A stretch of DNA of 63,244 nt, filler included, from Sluysia triapertura (Eukaryota), in the NCBI GenBank assembly GCA_046118255.1. It is 5 parts of 5 records of this genome, joined end to end, with 100 filler letters (N's around TTAATTAATTAA, not from the genome) between each part and the next. Parts side by side here need not be neighbours in the genome. Positions count along the whole stretch, not along the records: positions 1 to 13,231 come from JBJNIA010051228.1; 4 more parts are not named here. One strand, 5' to 3'. The notes beneath the pieces were generated by a model. It was not told the origin of the DNA. It was given only the letters and a program-made list of their open reading frames with translations, and made no database searches. Shown in pieces: positions 1 to 13,231 of this stretch. How positions within the stretch are numbered: position 1 is the stretch's first letter; each line of letters opens with the position of its first letter. Position numbers and translations under genes: made by a program.

Positions 1-593
1 TTTAGTTCTTTTAATTGACATACATGTATAATTAACAAACATCATTAATCTGATATCCATACTTAAATTTATAGGTTATAAAACCATCAGAACGATAACA
101 TCTATTTTTATAACTCTGTTTTAAAATAAATGTGACAATATAGCAAGCTACTTATATTGCCTATTTTAGCGAAGCAACTGAATCTCTTGAAGTAATATAA
201 ACTTATTTTTGATGATGGGAAAAATATAAACAAAGGACGATAACAATCATAAGACAAGAACAATAATGCGATAATAATAATATAGTAATAATGACACGAC
301 AATAGCAGTTTTAGTAATATTAATAATAAATTTTAGTTTGTATCTGTATATAATTGTTGAAATATTACTGTTACTGTGAAGATGTGCTGAATTTGCATTG
401 TTTTGTCGTGTAAAAATTGTTTCTCTTTTATGTATTGTGTCTGTTGATTTGATGTTTTGTGTTGGATTGAAATGAACTTTGTTTAATTTGTTTTTGTTTA
501 TGAGAAATGTGTTCATGTTTGTCTATGATTGTGTTTAAGTTGTGTTTTAAATTTTAGCGCACCAATTATGATATTTAATATATTTGTTTTCAG

Positions 594-602
594 ACAATAT
601 CG
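594..602 (+). CDS. 9-nt micro-exon ACA ATA TCG (TIS)
   Basis: tttcag|ACAATATCG|gttaat; paralog at 4176-4184. Confidence 0.7.
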
Positions 603-3600
603 GTTAATTATTATTTAATTCAAATTTTTGTTCTTATACAAATAATAAATAGTCATAGTAAAAGTAATTGTACAATTTTAATTTTAGACACAACCACCTA
701 AGGTAAATTTATTTTATTAAAATACAACTTATAATGATGAAATAATTAACAATACTATTTTACTTTCCAAATGTTTACTAAATTTTGATTTTAAAGTTTT
801 GTATTGTTCGTCTTCTTTTGTTAAATGAAACAGAATCTGCATGAGTTTTCATAAGGGTGCATTAATTTCTTGGTATTTCTTAACTCCACGAATCGTGTTT
901 TACATAGTTTCCAATATACAAATGGAATAATAATTTTTTGTTAACAGAATTGTATTTTGTATGTGATTTACGTATTAAAATTCTTAATTATCCAACGTTG
1001 AATTACATTTGAAGCAACTGTTATTGCGGATAAATTATTTTTGCTTTCAAAATATTAAATATACAGTTAAGAGTGTGTTGGAAATATATTTAACTAGTTC
1101 TATACTTTGCTGTTTTTACAAAATTTATTTATCTGTTATTCCGTTGTGTTGAGAAATTATAATTGTATAAAAAAATGTATAGTTTTTAAATATTATTCAT
1201 CTGAAACAATTAATGCAAATGTAATGCTTTATGTGGAACTTATCCCTTTAGGAAATAATACAAATTTGATAAAAAAATTCATTCAATTCATTGCTTTATA
1301 AGTGATATTATGTATAAAATTAAATAAATATATAAATTCAGGCAGCACCGGTTAGTATGTAGTGAATATTTTTTACCATTTATTCATTTACTACCTTTTT
1401 TGTAATTCTACCAAAATATTTTTACGATGATTTTCATTTAAATCTAGGCTGTAGGTGCAAGTCAAGGTTATGGGGTAAGCATTAAAAGTTTTATTGAAAT
1501 TTCATTCATTTAATTTAAACTAGATTTTCATAAATATTATAAATATGGTATTTATATGTTAATTTGTATTGGTTTATATAAGGAATCGATTTATTGGACA
1601 ATCTTATAAAAAATAATTGTATCGATTAAATAAAATTTTTTGGATAAGTTTTAAGTATTTTATAAATATTTTCTTAATATTGTGACAATTGGTATACTAT
1701 TTGGAACTTATCGCTTTTGAATTCTTAAAATTTAGTAATATATTTCACCGAATTAATTGCTTTATTATTGATATTGAATGTAGTATTTATTAAATATATA
1801 AATTTCCGGCAACAGTGCTTGGTATTAATTGAATTCCTATTTTTCTAATTCAATCAATATATATTCGCACTTAGACTGTAGGTATAAGTCAAGGTTTTGG
1901 GATTAGCTTTAAAATTTTTATTGTATTTTGATAGATTCCTCAAACACTATTGAAATATCATAACAGGTCAAAATGCAATGTTTAGAATATATTAGATATA
2001 GACATCCATAAATTTCTATTTGTAAAGATATTTAATATAGTTCATTGGCCAGTGTGAAATAATTTTACTGCGAAATGAAGTTTATATTTCAAGTTTTGAA
2101 TATTACAATAATTAGAATTAAATGTCTGAAAATAATTAAATTTTTAATTTATCACTAAATATATGTTCTTTTAATAACAAAGATTTGTTATCAATTCTTG
2201 TTACTTTATAGAATTTTTATGTTTACGTAGATATATTGTGAAAAAGGTAAAGTAATAGAATAAAAATAAAAACTTAAAGTGAGTTCACCAACGTACTGGG
2301 CTTACCAGCTAGGCTCAGCCGTTGGATTTTCTTGATAAGTTAATAGTAAGTAAGTCTCAAAGAATATAATATATGCTAAATGACTCTAAAAATGCTTGAT
2401 CTTCTGGAGGCAATTAAATTTCAAAATACTTTAATAATACTTAAATTTATAAATAGATTTTACGTTGATTCCTTTATACGGAATCTTTGAAAATGATTTT
2501 TCGTAGCTAGTAATAAATACTAGCGGTTGAAAGCATGAAACAGAACGAAAGATTTTATAATTAAAACTATGTAATTTATAATAACAAAAGTCAAAAGGTT
2601 TTTGTAATTTATTCTTAAGAGAAAAACGTTAATAAGGTACAATGATACATATAATTTACACAAATTAACTAATTCAGTTAATTTTCTTACTAAGAGATTT
2701 TAATGATAATGATTTTGCGTATATATCTGTGAAAAGATCCAATAATTCTGTACAGAAATTTACGTGTATTTTACTTATGATACTTCACAGTATCTTCCTT
2801 AACAGTAATTAACTAACGTGATCAAAATTTTTAAAATGCGTCTTCAATGAAATCGTTGCAACTGTTAGAAATTGTTGGAATAAAACTAATAACTGGAACT
2901 GTGTACTAAAATTGTTGAAAAGAATTTGTCGAAATTAAATTGAACTGTAAAATAGAATTGTGAATTGTCTTAAAATTTATTGCTTTATAAAGTGTCAATT
3001 CGGCCCTGACTGAATTGAAACAAAGTTAATAATTAAAACAAAATCTAAAATAATTTTAAAGATTTTTTTCGCTCACATTAATTTAAGAACTTCAATTAAT
3101 ATTTTAATATTTTAGTAAATTATAAAATCAAATAAAAATTGCATATTTAAAAGAAAAATCAAAAATTACTTTTATAAAATTTGAAATATCCAAATTCAAA
3201 AATTAAATTCCAAATGAATGTCTACAGCTGTTTAAAAATCAATAAAAATATATAATTGTTTACTTATAGTTACAAATATAGTGCATTGACGTCAATAAGC
3301 ATTGTGTATATTAAAGATATTTTAAGCCTATGTAAATATCAATGTAACTTATTTTCTCAATTTTAAATTAATGTTAAATTGTAATAAATTTTTATCGCTA
3401 ATTAAGGAAATAAAAAATCAATATTAATTCAAAATCATATTTATTACTTTAATATTTTACTGATATAGTTAGAATTTCAATTTACTATGATACTTCCTTG
3501 CTACTAAGCATTCTTTTCTTAATTTTATATTACGATTTAAATGAGAAATGTCACACATTATTGTCATGTATAACTGCATGTGAAAATAGTTTTAAATAAA

Positions 3601-6600
3601 ATTTCATAAAAATTTAAATGCTGTAATATTAATTCACTTAATATTAAGTATATTAAAAGATACATAATATAATCACTTACATTAATTGGCCCAAAAATAT
3701 TAATTTCTTATAGTTTTGTTATAATGAAAATATAATTAGTATTTCAATATTTTTTCGGGTAAAATCGATTAAGGTTATTTTAATTTTTTTATAATAATTG
3801 TAGAATAAAGTAAATAACTTTGCTTTCATCTGGCATCCTCTATGATTGATTTGTTTCATCAAATTTCATGAGGAATTCAATTTTAATAATAATCATTTCG
3901 CATTTTAAAACAAATATTTAAATGAATTCTCTTTTATTATAAGTATATAATATTTTTTCAGATGCCTTCAGCTAAGGTATTTAATACTATTTGAATTATT
4001 TTAATTTCATTTTCTACATGTAGTTTTTATTTTGAGCAGAAAAATATTTAAAATTTATTTATCGAAATTATTAAATTATCATTAACAATAATATAAATAA
4101 GGAAATAATTTAATTATTAATAATTTTCAGTTTTTTATTGTCGTTCAATAAAATTCTTATAATATTTATTATCAGACGATATCGGTTAATTAATATTTAA
4201 TAATATTTTGTTCTTATTCAAATAATAAATAGTCGTGGTGAAATTAATTGTATAATTGTAATTGTAGATGCAACCATCTAAGGTAAATTCATATTATTAA
4301 AATATGATTTATAATGATGGAATAATTAACTAAGAAAATTACTTTCGAAATTTGTACTAAGATTTGATTCTTTTCTTGTGTTAAGGGAAATAGGATGTGA
4401 ATGAGTTTTCATAAGGGTACATTAATTTCTTGGCATTTCTTAACTCATCATGGTTATCAGGAAATAATTATTAATTAGGTAATCTACATTGATTGACTGA
4501 AATTCAGGTGTCCTTGATTGACTTAATGAATTATTAATGACATTCATTTTGTGAAATTGTGTTTCTAATGCTAGGTGTTTTCTTAATCTAAAACTTAACT
4601 TGCAGCAAAATAAATTATTATTCTGAGTCCGTTTACAGTATTCGACTTACTAATGGCGTACCTGTAAAATTGCGTGAAAACTATTATCAAGATTAATTGT
4701 ACAAAATACTCTTTGCTTTACCTTAATCAATAATGGGCAAAATCTTCGTTTATGTCAACTAATACTAAATAGCTTATAAACTAATCAAGACCAACGCTGA
4801 CCTATGGAATATCAGAATTAATATAAAAATCAAGTGAATAATATTTGTATATAAATTTGTCGTTTCTTATATCTTCAAATCTTAATGACCGTTAGAACTT
4901 TGTAGTTTTTTATTAAAATTTAATGAAACAATATTGGAATCAATGTATTTTCGATAAAAAGTATATTTCAGTATAAATTGATCGTAGTGTACGGTAATGT
5001 TAGGATAATTATAATAAAAACAAGATTTGAAAATTTTTTAATACTTTTATTACACAAAATTAAGATTAAAAATGAAATTTATTATAAATTTATAAAATTC
5101 AATAAAAGCGACAGTCAACAACACAAAAATTTTATAAATGATAAATTTATAATAACAATAATAATTAAACTATAATAAGGGTTTAGCCGAGAGACTCTAC
5201 CCTATAATAAAGATTTTATAATTGACCTTTAGGACCAACTAAAGATTGGAGAATATATATATTAGATTGATTTTATGATTGGCTTTAATGATCACCCGTG
5301 CAAAACAGTAATTTAAGTTTATATTGTAGCTCAATGAGAGTTTGCACACTATGTAAATCAAACTTACGGATCACTTAGTAATATAGACAATCTATCTCCA
5401 GCAATATCGTTTGAATTTGAATTTATCTGTTGAGCCTCTTATCGAATACGCGGGAATCGCACAATAACTGAAATGATGGATGTGAAACCTTTGTACACAA
5501 ATAGTTTAATAATAAATTTGATGATGACAAGCCGAATGATGTCGAGAATAATTTTTTCTAGCAACTTTATTTTCCGAAATCACGAATTTCAAAATGGCGT
5601 AAAACAATTCTCTTTGTTCATATTTAATGGCGTTTTTGCTTTATGTATGTACAAAGACATCTTTTAACATTTGATTTACATAAACAAATTTATTTCTATA
5701 AGTTTCTTTTGAGTTATTTTTTGATTTATAATAATCATAATTTTAATTTTATTATAATTAAAATAATAATTTTTTAAATAATACAATTTTAATAATTTTT
5801 TTATAATTTTATTTTTACAAAAAACCATAAAAAATATAAAAATAAGATTTTTTACACCTTTACACTAACAATGGTTTGTGTCATTCTTTTCCTTTGCACA
5901 TTTACTGTTAGAAAGCAATCAAAACCATTAGATAATTAGCTGTTTCCAATATACATATAGGATAATAATTTTTTGTTGAAAAGTTGTATTTATATCTGAT
6001 TTATCTATTAGAATTCTAAATTTTTCAACGTTGAATTACATTTAAAGCAACTATTATTTGACGATAAATTATTTTTTAAATATACAGGTAATAGTGTAAG
6101 TTGATCAGAGGTCCCGCTTTTTCACAATTTGTCCCGCTATTAAATAGTATCTCTGAAATATATTTAACTTTGCCCTTTTATAAAATTTATCGATCAGTTA
6201 TTCCGTTGCACAATTATTGAACAATTGTGTTATTTTATAAATTATATTCATCTGAAACAATTCATGAAAATGTAATGCCTTATGTGGAACTTATCCTTTT
6301 AGGAAATAGTTAAAATTAATAAGAATTACATCCTATTAAATGCTTTATAAGTGATATTGAATATAATACTTAATGATTATATAAACTTTAGGCAGCATCA
6401 GTTAGTATTTAGTAATTATTATTTACCATTTACTCATTTTCGTACTCATTTACTTCCATTTTTGTAATTCTACCAATATACTTTTTACGATATCCTTTTC
6501 ATTTAATCTAGGCTGCAAGTGCAAGTCAAGCTTATGGGGTAAGTGTTTAAAGTTTATTCAAAATTCATTTATTTAATTTAAACTTGTCTTTTATAAATAT

Positions 6601-9600
6601 AATAAATATAGTATTTTATATGTTAATTCGCATTGGCAAGTATAATGAATTTATATGTAAGTTCAATCTTTGGAAAAGAATTGTGTCGATGAAATGAAAT
6701 TCTTTTTGCAATTTTTGTAAACTATCTGAAAATATTAGTGACAATATTATGTTATTTGGAACATGTTATTTTAGGAAATAATTAAAATTTAATAATAGAA
6801 TTACATCAAATTTATTGCTTTATCAATCATATTCAATATATATTCAGGCAGCATCGGTTAGTATTTACTGAATATTCTTTACCATTCCTTTTTGTAATTC
6901 TATCAAAATAATTTAATTATCTATTATATTGTCTTTTAGACTGCAGGTGTGAGTCAAGAATATCGAGTTAGCTATTTTTTTCTTTTTAATTTTCAATATA
7001 TAATCATCTTAAATAAAACAGTTGTATTATTTATTTTAAGTAACATTTCAAATAAAGAAATAAGAGTTATGATGTTGATGGTGATGCTCATGATAACTAT
7101 TATCAAGCTTATGCTTATAATAAATTGATCTAATCATTATTTATTTGATTTAATCCTCAATATTTCTGTGCTATATTTCTCTAATATCATCATCAATTCC
7201 ACCTACATACGGTTCCACGGTTTTAACATTCTCTGGACATTATCACAAACTTTCAACTTCAATTGATTTTTAAAATATAAGATTCCGTAAAAAATTGTAT
7301 TTATTTTATATATAATATTCATAGGAAAAATTTATTGAAAATGTAATTTCGAATTTTTCGTTTTATGAAATAATTAAAATTTAGTAAAAGAAAGACGTCA
7401 AAATCATAATTTTATAAATGATATTGAATATAATATTTAATAATTATATAAACTTTAGGCAGCATCGGTTAGTATTTAGTGATTATTATTTACCATTTAC
7501 TCATTTTCGTACCCATTTACTTCCATTTTTGTAATTCTACCAATATACTTTTTACGATATCCTTTTCATTTAATCTAGGCTGCAGGTGCAAGTCAAGGTT
7601 ATGGGGTAAGCGTTAAAAGTTTTATATAAATGTCATACATTTATTTTAAATTTTATTTATTTATTTTGCATTGGTAAATATAATGAATTGATACAATATG
7701 AATAAATCTATTTTGATTATTATCATTATAATTTAAAATTGACTTTGTTTATAAAGTAAATTCGAATAATTGTCTTTATTTTGATAAGATAAATTATTGC
7801 ATTGAATTTTATTCTGTACTTCAATCTTAGTTTTATGAATAGCATAATAAAATAACTGAATAATAATTTATAAAAATATACCTAATTAGTTTTAAATTTT
7901 ACTCTTGTCTTTGATTAAGTTTTAGAAACATTTTTTAACCAAGTGCTAAGTTGTTTATAAATAAATATTAAACATTGTGTTTGGAACTCAAAGCTTAATA
8001 AAAAATTTATGAGACATACGTATAATTTGCATGAAAGTAATAATAATGATATTATTGAACATGATATCTGAAAATAATTTTCTACACTTCAGCCGTCAGA
8101 GGTTAGGTTTACATTTGTAAACGTCATTAGTTACGTTTTTAGAAATATTATTTTAATTTTTTTATGCGTATTCTATATATTAGGGTACAATATATAAAGT
8201 TATAGGTGCTAATATACCTGAAAGTTTTGCACAGTAAATGATGTTATTTAATTTTAATTTATAAAATAAATTAATTTATATATGTTCTAATATATCCAAA
8301 CGTGCATTTATTTGATATAATTGTAAAAGCTTTTAGGTCTAATTCATTAAGATATTTTCATTAACCATAAATCAAATTTTTGTTAAATCATATCCATCTG
8401 TGTAATTTTATTGAACTGCAAACACTTATTGAAAATGCAATGTATAGAATATATTAGATAGAGACCTCGATAAATTTGTATTTATAAAGATATTTAATAT
8501 AGTTTATTCGCCAGTGTGAATTAATTTTACTACTAAATGAAGTTTATATTTCAATTTTTGAATATTACAACAATTAGAATTAAATGTCTGAAAATAATTA
8601 AATTTTTAATTTATAACTAAATATATGTTCTTTTGATAAAATTGATTGAGATTAGTCAAAGATTTGTTATCAATTCTTGTTACTTTATACTACTTTTACG
8701 TTTAGTAGATATTCACATTATAACCCTATGTAAATTTCAATGTAACTGATTTTCTCAATTTCAAGGTAATGCGACATTGTAATAAATTTCTATCGCTAAT
8801 TAAGGAAATAAAAATTAATGATAATTCAAGATTTAATATTTTACTGTTATAGCTAGAATTTCAATTTACTCTGATATATTCTAGCTTATAAGCATTCCTT
8901 TCATATTACAGTAATGTCAGAAAATATTTTTAAATAAAATTTCTTAAACAATTTAAATGCTATTACGTTAATTTTATATTAATTACATTAAGTTTATGAC
9001 AAGATTAATATTATCCTCACTCATATTTGTTGATCCAAAAATATTAATTTTTTTTCATTTTTTTATAACCACATTATTTATAACCATAATATATTTAATA
9101 ATTCAATGTATTTTCAGGTACAATCAATTAAGGTTTTTTTTTAATTTTTATAATAAATGTAGAATTAATTAAATAACTTTGTTTTCACATGACATAAGCT
9201 AGGATTAATGTGTTTCCTTCACTTTCGTGAATATTCCTTTTTTTCTGGATTGAGTTTTAATATTTTTATTCAAATTTTATACAATCTCGTTGAATCTTTT
9301 TTGTATTTTTAGTTTTTTTCACTTGATTTTCATAAATATTATTTAAGTGTATTTTATCTTTTGATTAGTATTGGTAACTATATGTAATTGATACCACATA
9401 AACATTCGAATGTGATTATTATAATTATAATAAAAATATTTATAAATTAATTTCGATCTAACATTTATTACTTTCATACGATAAATTATTCACTCGAATT
9501 TTTTTCGGTACACTTATTTTGACTTTAAAATAACAACAAAATAAATGAACCTTTGACTACATTTTACTCTTTAAATATCTTATCGGTATTGTTAATATGC

Positions 9601-11370
9601 AGCACTATCTTTCTCTAAGAATTGTGTCGATATGTTATAACTCATTAACCTAATTTTAATATTACTTAAAATGCAATGCTTTATTGGAGCTTATCGTATT
9701 TAGGAAATAATAAAAATTTGATAAAATTATATCTATAATTCATTGCTTTCTAACTGCTATTGAATGTATTATTCAACAATTATATAAACTTTAGGCAGCA
9801 TCGGTTAGCATTAATGAATATTATTTACCATTTACTCATTAACTTTCGTTTTTTGTAATTCAATGAAACTCTCTTTTAGACTGAAGGTCTAAGTCAAGAT
9901 TATCGGTTTAGTTGTTATAACGCACAATATTTTTTTTAAATTTCAGTATAATAATCCTTATTATACTATTCTTTAATTGATTAAATTTATTTATTGAAAA
10001 TTCATTTCCAGTTTGATGTTTAGTTTCATATCAGACATTGCTGCATCAAACTTTGTGTGACTCATAATATTATCAACAACATTCCTAGTTTAAATCGTAC
10101 ATTCCTTAAAAATTTCATAGGTTTTCTTATAAATTCATCCTACAAATCATCCACATACTCAAATAAATAACATGAATACAAACACGGCTTGTGGTATCGA
10201 CTTCATGGCAACAGGTAAAAGAAGAAAATTCTCACAAATTGCAGTCCATTTAACAAACCCATCCTACAGATCGTCTAAAACTCAAATAAATTATGCTTTT
10301 AAAATATTAAAAAGATTACATTTTGGAAGTATTACAGGTTAGACATAGAGTATACTTAAATTCCCAATGAAATACATAATGATTAAAACAACTATTAAAA
10401 CAAGTAAATTCATCAGAATACTAATTGATGCTACCTATAAACAAATTTTATATATTTTATAAAAATATTCGTATGAAATATTAGGGAAATTTAATCCTTT
10501 ATTGAGAACTTATTCTTTTAGGAAATAATACGAATTGATAAAAAAATTACGTAAAATTTTAACTGATATTGAATATAATATCTAATTATATAAACTGCAG
10601 GCAGCATCGTTTAGTATTATTGAATATTATTTATCGTTTACTCATTAACTTCCTTTTTTGAAATTCAATGAACATAATTTTTCGATATTTTTTTAATATA
10701 TAGGCTGCAGGTGCAAGTCAACGTCATGGCGTTAGCTTTAAAATGTTTATTCAAATTTCGTACAATCTGCTTTAATCACTTTTTCAATATTCATTTATTT
10801 TAAACTTGATTTTCATAAATATTATAAACATTATTTTTATATTAATTAGTATTGGTAATACAAGGAATTTATAACCACATAAATAATTCGAATGTGATTA
10901 TTATCACTATAATTTAAAAGTGACTTTGTTTATAAAGTAAAGTCTAACCAACATTTGTTACGATATGTTTTTGAATTGAATTTTATTTTAAGAATAAAAT
11001 AATAGCATAATAAAGCAACTAAGTAGAAAAATTTATTTAATTAGTTTTAGATTTCCTATTATTTCCAATATTATTGCTCCTGTTGTTACGTACCTCTACT
11101 TAAAAATAATTTTAACGAAGTTTTAAGTTGCTTATAAATATTGAGTAATATGTGTTGTGTAATTTTATGCATTGTACTCAGATCCTAAAGTTTAGTCAAA
11201 AATTTAAATGAAACATACGTAATAATTTGTACGAAATTAGTAATTATAATATTATTGAATATTATCTGAAACAATTTTACATACTTCAGCCATCAGAGGT
11301 TAGCGTTACGTTTTTAGAAATAGTTTTACTATTTTAAGCGTATTCTAAATATTAGAATATAATATATAAA
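594..11370 (+). CDS. Putative micro-exon gene (partial; start and stop exons not identified) encoding a low-complexity Ala/Ser/Gly/Gln/Tyr/Lys repeat protein
   Basis: 18 exons of 9, 15 or 27 nt, each between (c/t)ag and gt, totalling 276 nt = 92 codons. Only phase 0 is stop-free. Differences between paralogous short exons fall mainly at synonymous third positions. Confidence 0.75.
688..702 (+). CDS. 15-nt micro-exon (TQPPK)
   Basis: ttttag|ACACAACCACCTAAG|gtaaat; paralog at 4268-4282. Confidence 0.75.
1342..1350 (+). CDS. 9-nt micro-exon (AAP)
   Basis: ttcag|GCAGCACCG|gttagt. Confidence 0.75.
1448..1474 (+). CDS. 27-nt micro-exon (AVGASQGYG)
   Basis: tctag|GCTGTAGGTGCAAGTCAAGGTTATGGG|gtaagc. 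Confidence 0.8.
1809..1901 (+). pseudogene. Dead micro-exon dyad: 9-nt copy 1809-1817 and 27-nt copy 1875-1901 (TVGISQGFG)
   Basis: 9-nt copy flanked by cg and ct instead of ag and gt; 27-nt copy keeps tag but its donor reads attagc. Confidence 0.6.
2288..2325 (+). other. GC-rich hairpin, copy 1
   Basis: ccaacg-ta-ctgggctta-(ccagc)-taggctcag-c-cgttgg. Confidence 0.55.
3759..3773 (+). pseudogene. Dead 15-nt micro-exon (VKSIK)
   Basis: ttttcgg|GTAAAATCGATTAAG|gttatt; acceptor cag mutated to cgg relative to paralog 9118-9132. Confidence 0.55.
3962..3976 (+). CDS. 15-nt micro-exon (MPSAK)
   Basis: ttttttcag|ATGCCTTCAGCTAAG|gtattt. Confidence 0.7.
4176..4184 (+). CDS. 9-nt micro-exon (TIS)
   Basis: atcag|ACGATATCG|gttaat; synonymous ACA/ACG difference from 594-602. 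Confidence 0.7.
4268..4282 (+). CDS. 15-nt micro-exon (MQPSK)
   Basis: ttgtag|ATGCAACCATCTAAG|gtaaat. Confidence 0.75.
6392..6400 (+). CDS. 9-nt micro-exon (AAS)
   Basis: ctttag|GCAGCATCA|gttagt. Confidence 0.75.
6512..6538 (+). CDS. 27-nt micro-exon (AASASQAYG)
   Basis: tctag|GCTGCAAGTGCAAGTCAAGCTTATGGG|gtaagt. Confidence 0.8.
6848..6856 (+). CDS. 9-nt micro-exon (AAS)
   Basis: ttcag|GCAGCATCG|gttagt. Confidence 0.75.
6940..6966 (+). CDS. 27-nt micro-exon (TAGVSQEYR)
   Basis: cttttag|ACTGCAGGTGTGAGTCAAGAATATCGA|gttagc. Confidence 0.7.
7459..7467 (+). CDS. 9-nt micro-exon (AAS)
   Basis: ctttag|GCAGCATCG|gttagt. Confidence 0.75.
7579..7605 (+). CDS. 27-nt micro-exon (AAGASQGYG)
   Basis: tctag|GCTGCAGGTGCAAGTCAAGGTTATGGG|gtaagc. 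Confidence 0.8.
8093..8101 (+). CDS. 9-nt micro-exon (PSE)
   Basis: cttcag|CCGTCAGAG|gttagg; paralog 11290-11298 differs only by synonymous CCG/CCA. Confidence 0.7.
8184..8198 (+). CDS. Possible 15-nt micro-exon (GTIYK)
   Basis: attag|GGTACAATATATAAA|gttata; lies 82 nt after the PSE exon like the other dyads; weak donor. Confidence 0.4.
9118..9132 (+). CDS. 15-nt micro-exon (VQSIK)
   Basis: ttttcag|GTACAATCAATTAAG|gttttt. Confidence 0.65.
9795..9803 (+). CDS. 9-nt micro-exon (AAS)
   Basis: ctttag|GCAGCATCG|gttagc. Confidence 0.75.
9880..9906 (+). pseudogene. 27-nt micro-exon with lost in-frame donor (TEGLSQDYR)
   Basis: cttttag|ACTGAAGGTCTAAGTCAAGATTATCGG|tttagt. Confidence 0.55.
10601..10609 (+). 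pseudogene. 9-nt micro-exon with lost in-frame donor (AAS)
   Basis: ctgcag|GCAGCATCG|tttagt. Confidence 0.55.
10704..10730 (+). CDS. 27-nt micro-exon (AAGASQRHG)
   Basis: tatag|GCTGCAGGTGCAAGTCAACGTCATGGC|gttagc. Confidence 0.7.
11290..11298 (+). CDS. 9-nt micro-exon (PSE)
   Basis: cttcag|CCATCAGAG|gttagc. Confidence 0.7.
11356..11370 (+). CDS. Possible 15-nt micro-exon (NIIYK)
   Basis: attag|AATATAATATATAAA|gttata; paralog of 8184-8198. Confidence 0.35.
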
Positions 11371-11947
11371 GTTATAGATGTTAATGTACCTGAACATTTC
11401 TAAATTAAAATTAAAGGCCATCATTAATTAATGATGTTATTTAATTTTAATTTATATATGTTCTAATTTATCCAAACATGCATTTATTTGATATCAATAT
11501 ATAAGTACTTTTAGGTTTAATTCATTAAGATGATTTCATTAATTATAAATTATATTTTGGTACATCATAACCCTACGTTTAATTTATTGAACCTCAAACA
11601 CTTATTGAAATAAAAGACAAATGAAAATGCAATGAATAGAATATATTAGATATAGACCTCGATAAATATATTTAATGCGATTTATTGGCCAGTGTGAACT
11701 AATTTTACTACGACATGAAATTTATATTTCAAATTTCGAATATTACAATAATTAGAATTAAACATCTGAAAATAGTTTAATTTTTTATACATTAGTATAA
11801 ATATGTTCTTTTAAAAAAATTATTAATATTAGTCAAAGATTTGTTATCAATTCTTTTTTACTTTATAGTATTTTTACGCAGATATTCTTATTTGTGAGAC
11901 AAAAGTTAATTTATTTGCTCGAGAATAAAGATGTGAATGTGAGTTCA

Positions 11948-11986
11948 CCAACGTATCTAGTCTTACTGGTTAGGGTTAGCCGTTGG
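11948..11986 (+). other. GC-rich hairpin, copy 2
   Basis: ccaacg-tat-ctagtctta-(ctggt)-tagggttag-c-cgttgg. Confidence 0.55.
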
Positions 11987-12730
11987 ATTTTTTAGAAGAA
12001 AATAACTGTCAATTAACAATATCAGTAATGCTTATTTGATTTATTAAGTGTATTTGTCTTTAAATTGCTTTCTTATAAATATTTTATCAGTTAAGCTTAC
12101 GAAAATCCTACTTTAAATAGGATATTTATAATAATTCACTATTTTTCGCTACCGATAAAAATTCGGATTAATAATTGATTTAAGGAATTTAATGATTTTG
12201 TGACTGTAACAATTTACAACGTTATTACTTTCAATTTTCTAATTTCTTTATGAATTTACGAATGATCCTTTAAACAGGATTGAAAACGTTTTAGATAATT
12301 TATGTGTATCGATGTTAAAGATCGGCTTTTATGAAAACTGATTTAATAAGTTTAGTGAATTATGTATATATTAACGGTTACAGTAAAAGAAAAAACAAAA
12401 GATTCTTACAATAATAATTATCAAAATTAAGTTTACTTGAATTAACTATAATAAAGTAATTTTAATTAAGATTTTACGAAGAATCTTTAAACGGTTCTAA
12501 AATACATTATATAATAATTTAAGTATATTTTACAAACGTACTAAAATGTACAGCAACTTAAGAATAATGAACTAACAAAATAGTCCAGAAATTTGGACCT
12601 TCGATGTTTAAATTTTTTAAACCAACTGTTGATAATAATTTTTAAAAACAAATGTTATGAGTTTTAGTTTTTAAAATGTTATGTATATATACTAATTTAC
12701 CTAACACTGAAACAATTAAAACAATTGATT

Positions 12731-12840
12731 TTAACCCTTTCAATGCTGCGGGGATTTACATGTCTCAGAGACTGATTATTTACTACTGGGATATATTTAT
12801 CTCATAATTAAACTACTTCAGGGACATATGTGTCCCAAGG
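12731..12840 (+). mobile_element. piggyBac-like terminus (TTAA + CCCTTT...) with three subterminal repeats
   Basis: ttaa|ccctttcaatgctgcg followed by gggatttacatgtctca, gggatatatttatctca, gggacatatgtgtccca; partner end not seen. Confidence 0.45.
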
Positions 12841-13231
12841 AATTTTATCAAAAACCATATTTTCTAAAAATCTGAAATTATGTAAACATGTCCCTTTACT
12901 TATTTACATCACATTTAGTTCAATTGTACGGAAATATCTTCACTGGCAAAAATTAATATTGAAATTCATATTTAAAGTTAAAGATTTTAAAATAATTTTA
13001 ATACATAAATTTAAAAATAATTACTTACATTATATAACCGACTAGAACGTTCAAGATCGTAAATATTTTCAAAATTAAAATTTTATAAATAAAAATAGAT
13101 TGAGACGCAGAGCTGAAGTGCACGGACGACATTTGGGGCATTTATGAGTGTAATATAACATGTGCATTTAACAATTTTTGTAAAAGTTATTCTCTGTAAA
13201 AATAAATAGCTATTTGCTAGCGTTCTCCATA

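Follow-up and report, generated by a model that had tools for sequence, protein, structure and literature searches.

The question raised by this stretch of DNA from Sluysia triapertura is whether a run of very short, GC-richer islands, scattered along an AT-rich contig, represents the exons of a single protein-coding gene. The window, that is, the whole stretch of DNA, is 63,244 nucleotides long; the part analysed here, positions 1–13231, corresponds to contig JBJNIA010051228.1 (C51228) of a 619-Mb genome assembly in 263,945 contigs. An earlier note had read the islands as a micro-exon gene (MEG) of the type known from schistosomes. On the evidence set out below, we consider it likely that the window holds the middle part, without either end, of a flatworm protein-coding gene with a MEG-like organisation, built from exons of 9, 15 and 27 nt.

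All 18 islands described in the earlier note are present on the plus strand between positions 594 and 11298, with lengths of exactly 9, 15 or 27 nt and with the peptides given for them. Each is preceded by a T/C-rich tract and AG and followed by GT (18/18), and their GC content, 33–78 %, exceeds the ~22 % of the sequence around them and of the contig along its whole length. The 18 exons add up to 276 nt across a 10.7-kb span, with introns of 83–2487 nt and no larger exon in between, and frame 0 runs through them, joined in order, without a stop. They were said to be invisible to ORF (open reading frame) finders, and indeed a scan of the contig yielded no noteworthy ORF of at least 50 amino acids and none that covers the micro-exons. 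The claim that any subset of exons preserves the frame also holds, as every exon is symmetric and in phase 0. Comparison with the rest of the genome resolves the islands into seven consensus types, which we name by length: A9 (AAS), B27 (AAGASQGYG), C9 (TIS), D15 (TQPPK), E15m (MPSAK), E15v (VQSIK) and F9 (PSE).

In the window, the series begins with C9 (TIS, 594–602; ttttcag before, gttaat after; 10 intact copies in the genome) and, 85 nt further on, D15 (TQPPK, 688–702; 8 intact copies), followed by A9 (AAP, 1342–1350; 18 intact copies) and B27 (AVGASQGYG, 1448–1474; 27 copies). E15m (MPSAK, 3962–3976; 8 intact copies) leads into a second C9 (TIS, 4176–4184), which has ACG where the first has ACA, a synonymous difference, and a second D15 (MQPSK, 4268–4282). 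Three pairs of A9 and B27 come next: AAS (6392–6400) with AASASQAYG (6512–6538), AAS (6848–6856) with TAGVSQEYR (6940–6966), and AAS (7459–7467) with AAGASQGYG (7579–7605), the last of these B27 exons being identical to the family consensus. The series continues with F9 (PSE, 8093–8101; 6 copies), E15v (VQSIK, 9118–9132; weak donor gttttt; 4 intact copies), A9 (AAS, 9795–9803) and B27 (AAGASQRHG, 10704–10730), and it closes with a second F9 (PSE, 11290–11298), in which CCA replaces the CCG at 8093, again synonymously.

The islands belong to a family. Genome searches, together with scans of 20 contigs, revealed ~79 intact exon copies across ~20 contigs of the same genome, and these follow a constant order, E15v-E15m-C9-D15-(A9-B27)n-F9, with n between one and three; two contigs carry an additional exon type of 33 nt. 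Exons come in pairs with short introns of ~80–220 nt (C9-D15 81–121 nt; A9-B27 mostly 76–111 nt, with a single unit at 45 nt; E15v-E15m ~190–220 nt), and the pairs are set 0.3–2.5 kb apart by sequence with transposon debris. Self-comparison showed the entire region, introns included, to be a nested segmental duplication at 65–87 % identity; the array was built by nested tandem duplication, in which ~0.45-kb A9-B27 units lie within super-units of several kb. Since every exon has a whole-codon length and the same phase, exons can be gained, lost or skipped with the frame intact, and this tolerance is visible over evolutionary time in the array itself, where dead exons are interspersed among live ones. 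In contig C184187 (L014), a ~2.2-kb insertion at ~880–3100, flanked by similar direct repeats of ~100 nt, separates two B27 units and is likely a long terminal repeat (LTR)-type element inside the array.

The most telling result for coding exons is a switch in codon choice at their ends. Within the exons, codons are those that the genome prefers (GCA/GCT, GGT, AGT/TCA, CAA, TAT, CCA/CCT, ACA/ACT). At the exon-final position, codons ending in G take over: TCG in 23 of 25 cases (8 % in genome usage), GGG in 8 of 12 (2 %), AAG in 15 of 18 (25 %) and GAG in 5 of 5 (13 %). Rare G-ending final codons of this kind fit a coding exon whose last base is the −1 G of a 5′ splice site. Base composition points to the same frame, with GC in frame 0 at 59/67/8 % by codon position when all copies are taken and the last exon base is excluded; for the seven consensus exons alone, the difference between position 3 and positions 1+2 is significant (Fisher p = 7e-6). 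ORFs of the genome's HSP70 genes show the same trend, at 49/37/20 %. By contrast, a loose count of exon-like patterns on the plus strand gave 29, where shuffled sequence averaged 13 and never exceeded 26, a roughly twofold excess that is not decisive, so that the strength of the case lies in the comparison of paralogues, codon-position composition and codon usage.

The splice sites of the array resemble those of ordinary genes in this genome. Many array donors have T at +3 (GTTAGT, GTTAGC, GTTAAT), and introns of the HSC70 and BiP-like genes, whose donor and acceptor types the array matches, use GTTAGT and GTTATT beside GTAAGC, GTAATT, GTATGT and GTAAGT. The short introns between A9 and B27, such as that at 7468–7578 on the plus strand, also contain a conserved block ~30–65 nt upstream of the B27 acceptor. 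At 7500–7545 of the window, and in paralogues, it reads TTTTTGTAATTCTACCAA and then TTTTTAC; across 23 units (alignment columns 217–252) it is 76–86 % identical with few gaps, and could serve as a branch-point region or as an enhancer, within the intron, of micro-exon splicing. Most B27 copies carry an internal GT after base 19 (CAAG|GTTATG), for example behind 1448–1466 and 7579–7597, which, if used as a donor, would produce a 19-nt exon and a frame shift.

When all exon types were aligned with 150-nt flanks, no gap was found in 1047 exon cells, against 31 % gaps in the flanks; for B27, 27 of 27 copies are exactly 27 nt long, without an indel. Divergence from the consensus, compared within each base type, was 0.10 in exons and 0.28 in flanks at G/C sites (Fisher 2e-21), and 0.07 and 0.15 at A/T sites (Fisher 1e-7). 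Matched for composition in this way, exons are 2–3 times less diverged than their surroundings. Substitutions in the exons are likewise fewer than the rate and spectrum of the introns predict, with 33 synonymous and 74 non-synonymous differences where 55 and 193 would be expected.

Exon decay goes together with splice-site loss. When units were picked by their B27 exon only, so that A9 played no part in the selection, the 16 units in which A9 retains both AG and GT had 0–2 mismatches and no indel in that exon, whereas in the 7 units without intact sites A9 is mostly deleted, frameshifted or diverged. Copies of B27 that lack a site have 5, 6, 4 and 1 mismatches, compared with a mean of 2.6, and one of them carries a stop. 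The window itself has five such decayed copies, absent from the earlier note and each missing one or both splice sites. A decayed A9-B27 unit at 1809–1901 accounts for two, an A9 pseudo-exon at 1809–1817 with borders CG..CT and a B27 pseudo-exon at 1875–1901 with donor AT and 5 mismatches to the consensus. The others are an E15v copy (VKSIK) at 3759–3773 that has lost its acceptor (cgg), a B27 copy at 9880–9906 with donor TT and 6 mismatches, and an A9 copy at 10601–10609 whose donor is lost (TT); all lie on the plus strand.

To place the organism, we built trees from an intronless mortalin ORF and an HSC70 ORF on other contigs of the genome; no protein identical to either was present in the protein database searched, so that this genome's proteome is not among its public entries. 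In both trees, the genome falls within the flatworm clade (Shimodaira–Hasegawa approximate likelihood-ratio test, SH-aLRT, 99 % for mortalin and 95 % for HSC70) and beside Dugesia japonica (97 % and 92 %), outside the flukes and tapeworms. The trees thus do not recover it within Neodermata, the reported range of MEGs so far, although this range does not strictly define them. As the trees include no monogenean, 'free-living' is our inference; the very low GC content fits triclad-like genomes (Schmidtea, 29.9 %) better than that of Protopolystoma (37.7 %) (PMC6739440). In the same genome, the HSP70 and tubulin families are large (75 and 99 matches), with several intronless genes and many copies containing stops, which suggests abundant retro-pseudogenes.

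Several observations weigh against a functional gene. The sole public sequencing run that contains this stretch is genomic DNA, which covers 5400–11399 at ~30x and has no splice-like joints; since no exon exceeds 27 nt, a mature mRNA and the genome would have no 31-mer in common. Because exon copies were gathered under mismatch caps and an AG/GT requirement, the analyses of GC by position, of substitutions and of gaps and divergence are biased towards conservation. The copies descend from common ancestors, so that one event may be counted as several differences, and gene conversion may also homogenise them. Protein constraint is weak, with a ratio of non-synonymous to synonymous rates (dN/dS) of ~0.6. 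Variability in B27 by codon position, 0.21/0.20/0.12, shows no third-position excess, likely because third positions are already at A/T mutational equilibrium. Scans for a signal-peptide exon (ATG, hydrophobic stretch, GT) returned weak candidates only, and no stop-codon exon was found in the contig. Finally, the raw identity of B27 is 0.82, against 0.80 in ungapped columns of the A9-B27 introns. The earlier note had named as refutation an alignment in which the islands were no better conserved than their flanks: by raw identity B27 comes close to this, while base-matched divergence and gaps favour the islands, and the near-equality in raw identity is a matter of composition, since the introns are nearly two-letter sequence.

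With the genomic nature of the one public run, the low constraint and the intron-like identity in mind, one might take the array for a relic that is not expressed, consisting of former exons or of part of a segmentally duplicated repeat, no longer spliced into mRNA, whose copies resemble one another through recent duplication or gene conversion rather than through selection; the five dead copies in the window and the many dispersed repeats in its introns would suit this picture. We nevertheless regard it as improbable. Among ~65 aligned exon copies there is not one indel, against 31 % gaps alongside; base-matched divergence is two to three times lower in exons; the split between intact and decayed A9 copies tracks the splice sites; G and C are held at codon positions 1 and 2 while introns of this genome lose G/C at 27–28 %; and codon choice at exon ends fits active donor sites. 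That these are genuine exons with a different reading frame, or with the opposite strand as the sense strand, is very hard to credit. Taken alone, B27 has no stop in any of the three frames, and most exon types have none in frame +1. The exon sequences show, however, that frame +2 is interrupted by a TAA in each exon of 15 nt and frame +1 by a TAG in three of the intact copies of B27 (GCTGTAGG variants). Frame 0 is the only one that agrees with codon usage and with GC by position. On the minus strand the borders become AC..CT, and a generic scan for exons gave 20 candidates there, compared with 100 on the sense strand.

A further question is what such a gene would be for. Regulated exon skipping in the array is possible, and one could go on to propose, in line with the combinatorial protein family of the earlier note, that the main purpose of the gene is to generate a range of secreted variants in this way, at a host interface like that of schistosome MEGs. 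For this speak the symmetry and common phase of all exons, any subset of which stays in frame; the many donors weakened by a T at +3 or in some other way, such as gttttt at 9133, a feature that would make skipping easier; and the precedent of Schistosoma mansoni, whose MEG isoforms arise mainly through alternative splicing of central exons (bioRxiv 10.1101/2023.06.21.545858). Yet constitutive introns of this genome can have T at +3 as well; in a product made of modular repeats, as in other repetitive structural genes, exon duplication would be expected to leave symmetric exons in any case; the animal's place beside a free-living planarian suggests no obvious host interface; and the signal-peptide candidates are weak. 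On balance, we find this role rather unlikely. Under the reading we prefer, that of a MEG-like protein-coding gene, the array would be transcribed and its exons spliced in series, giving a secreted, repetitive, low-complexity protein rich in Ala, Ser, Gly and Gln. In the predicted product, the 92 codons in the window comprise 26 % Ala, 18 % Ser, 11 % Gly, 9 % Gln and 8 % Pro; Tyr and Lys recur regularly, and cysteine is absent. Judged by composition, it could be a structural, matrix or adhesive protein, possibly cross-linked through Tyr, Lys or Gln.

Both ends of the gene seem to lie off the contig, as the earlier note had suspected. Positions 1–235 match, and 1–593 as a whole are homologous to, an internal intron of a paralogue, which indicates that the gene runs off the start of the contig, and at the other end 12000–13231 consists of dispersed repeats, in which no 3′ end was located. 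The best signal-peptide-like ORF (L014:2224-2307) lies inside the insertion bounded by direct repeats at ~880–3100 described above. A candidate 3′ exon comes from two paralogous contigs, C197341 (L026) and C3669, where C9-D15 is followed by a 33-nt acidic exon (VETEPDERLVA or DETELDEYVSV) and then by a larger conserved exon. This larger exon, which starts THAGPGSR (THAGPGSRIIEDWLNKN...), has two genome copies only (L026 3283–3372 on the minus strand; C3669 1348–1509), which share at least 24 conserved codons, with 4 of 8 differences synonymous, and in which the frame runs for 30 or 54 codons before a stop; two paralogous members of the gene family would thus have it as their 3′ exon. A search of its 30-aa version (L026:3283-3372:-) against 1.84 billion proteins gave no credible relatives. 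Four hits, among them a decapeptide-repeat protein and a LAP1-like protein, are repeat proteins matched over 17–27 residues, in several stretches, and we attribute them to chance similarity that the repeats have multiplied.

How does the predicted gene compare with micro-exon genes described elsewhere? In work on tapeworm and schistosome genomes, MEGs are defined operationally by features that include exons shorter than 70 nt with a length divisible by three (PMC7653826). Conventional terminal exons also belong to the class, the 5′ one encoding a signal peptide and the 3′ one carrying the stop codon. All 18 exons predicted here are 9, 15 or 27 nt long and the ~79 copies keep their lengths, and by that definition the predicted structure qualifies as a MEG. 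In S. mansoni, MEG exons measure 6–81 bp, mostly 15 bp, and introns 0.1–5 kb (bioRxiv 10.1101/2023.06.21.545858). Like these genes, the array has short multiple-of-three exons and introns of similar size, escapes ORF finders, tolerates exon loss or skipping without a change of frame and has expanded by duplication. Whereas S. mansoni MEGs have 10–20 exons, verified isoforms and products of at most 189 amino acids with a signal peptide, the structure predicted here from DNA has at least 18 exons in the window and ~79 in the family, arranged as a nested tandem repeat; its product would be long, repetitive and of low complexity (Ala/Ser/Gly/Gln), and the genome that carries it groups with a planarian. 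Since the organism stands beside Dugesia and not with the flukes, we view the array as an architectural analogue, not a demonstrated relative, of schistosome MEGs. The MEG-type reading of the earlier note is thus borne out for the run of symmetric phase-0 micro-exons, their splice sites and their coding signature, although the predicted product looks unlike a short MEG peptide.

Among tapeworms, many MEGs of Echinococcus multilocularis and Hymenolepis microstoma contain repetitive sequence and lie in tandem clusters, and ten of those of H. microstoma form one cluster on chromosome 6 with a common amino-acid motif, consensus MRLFILLCFAVTLWACPKQCP (PMC7653826). Nothing comparable to MRLFILLCFAVTLWACPKQCP was found in the array, which is known from DNA alone, whereas the tapeworm genes were annotated from RNA-seq and belong to Neodermata. 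Outside the flatworms, the bicycle genes of gall-forming aphids, reportedly described by Korgaonkar et al. in 2021 and by Stern and Han in 2022, are large families of genes for secreted proteins with many micro-exons, which gene structure, more than sequence, makes recognisable; their exons are in phase 2 and their proteins have paired Cys-Tyr-Cys motifs. The array differs from these in its phase (0), in the lack of cysteine from its 92 codons and in its flatworm genome. Fibrillar collagens offer a further parallel, being encoded by series of 54-bp exons that are symmetric and in phase 0, arose by tandem exon duplication and are spliced constitutively; exons of the collagen type, 45–108 bp long and multiples of 9 bp, each encode an integral number of Gly-X-Y repeats. 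Unlike these, the exons of the array are 9–27 nt long, alternate among seven types and show no Gly-X-Y periodicity in any type.

MEG architecture has so far been described only in parasitic flatworms, and our literature search found no report of MEGs in planarians. The organisation has been listed as a proposed neodermatan gain, possibly with a deeper history (PMC4398949), and curating these genes in the various lineages of flatworms has been given high priority (PMC7653826). It is a real if tentative possibility, on present sequence evidence, that MEG-type organisation predates parasitism, with a planarian-allied lineage possessing one or a few giant micro-exon genes of at least 70 symmetric exons of 9–33 nt in a nested tandem array. 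If so, an architecture proposed as neodermatan would have a 'turbellarian' history, and would have arisen to build and resize repetitive secreted proteins, not for immune evasion. The array is also an unusually clear record of how such a gene grows, in which exon pairs duplicate, splice-site mutations kill single exons and the frame survives. In addition, the combination of GC by codon position, preferred internal codons and a rare G-ending exon-final codon provides a recipe for finding such genes that needs no RNA.

Contigs of the DNA run carry two variants in the exons of the window, both synonymous: G>A at 7605, the last base of a B27, and A>G at 9126, in the exon encoding VQSIK. They probably stem from paralogous copies (contig C95001 has the same TCG). 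Scans of the contig detected no transfer RNA gene and no match to Rfam. The introns of the array are rich in dispersed repeats, and GC-rich stretches at 2262–2345 and 11930–12005, which can form a hairpin with the stem CCAACG/CGTTGG (minimum free energy of the first copy −24 kcal/mol, z = −3.3), were considered as an exon or an RNA gene and rejected, as they form the terminus of a dispersed repeat, of which the genome has at least 2084 candidate copies at 90–96 % identity. This repeat is probably a short interspersed nuclear element (SINE) or a miniature inverted-repeat transposable element (MITE). A second dispersed repeat, of ~235 bp, occupies 12731–12965, inside 12009–13100: a 1.2-kb query had 842 candidate genome matches, of which those scored fell mostly on 12731–12965, and the repeat sits inserted within another repeat of ~10 copies. 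Finally, 5600–5800 is A/T-rich low-complexity sequence in which the summed contig depth in the DNA run reaches ~30,000, compared with ~30 in unique sequence; this segment is a very abundant simple repeat.

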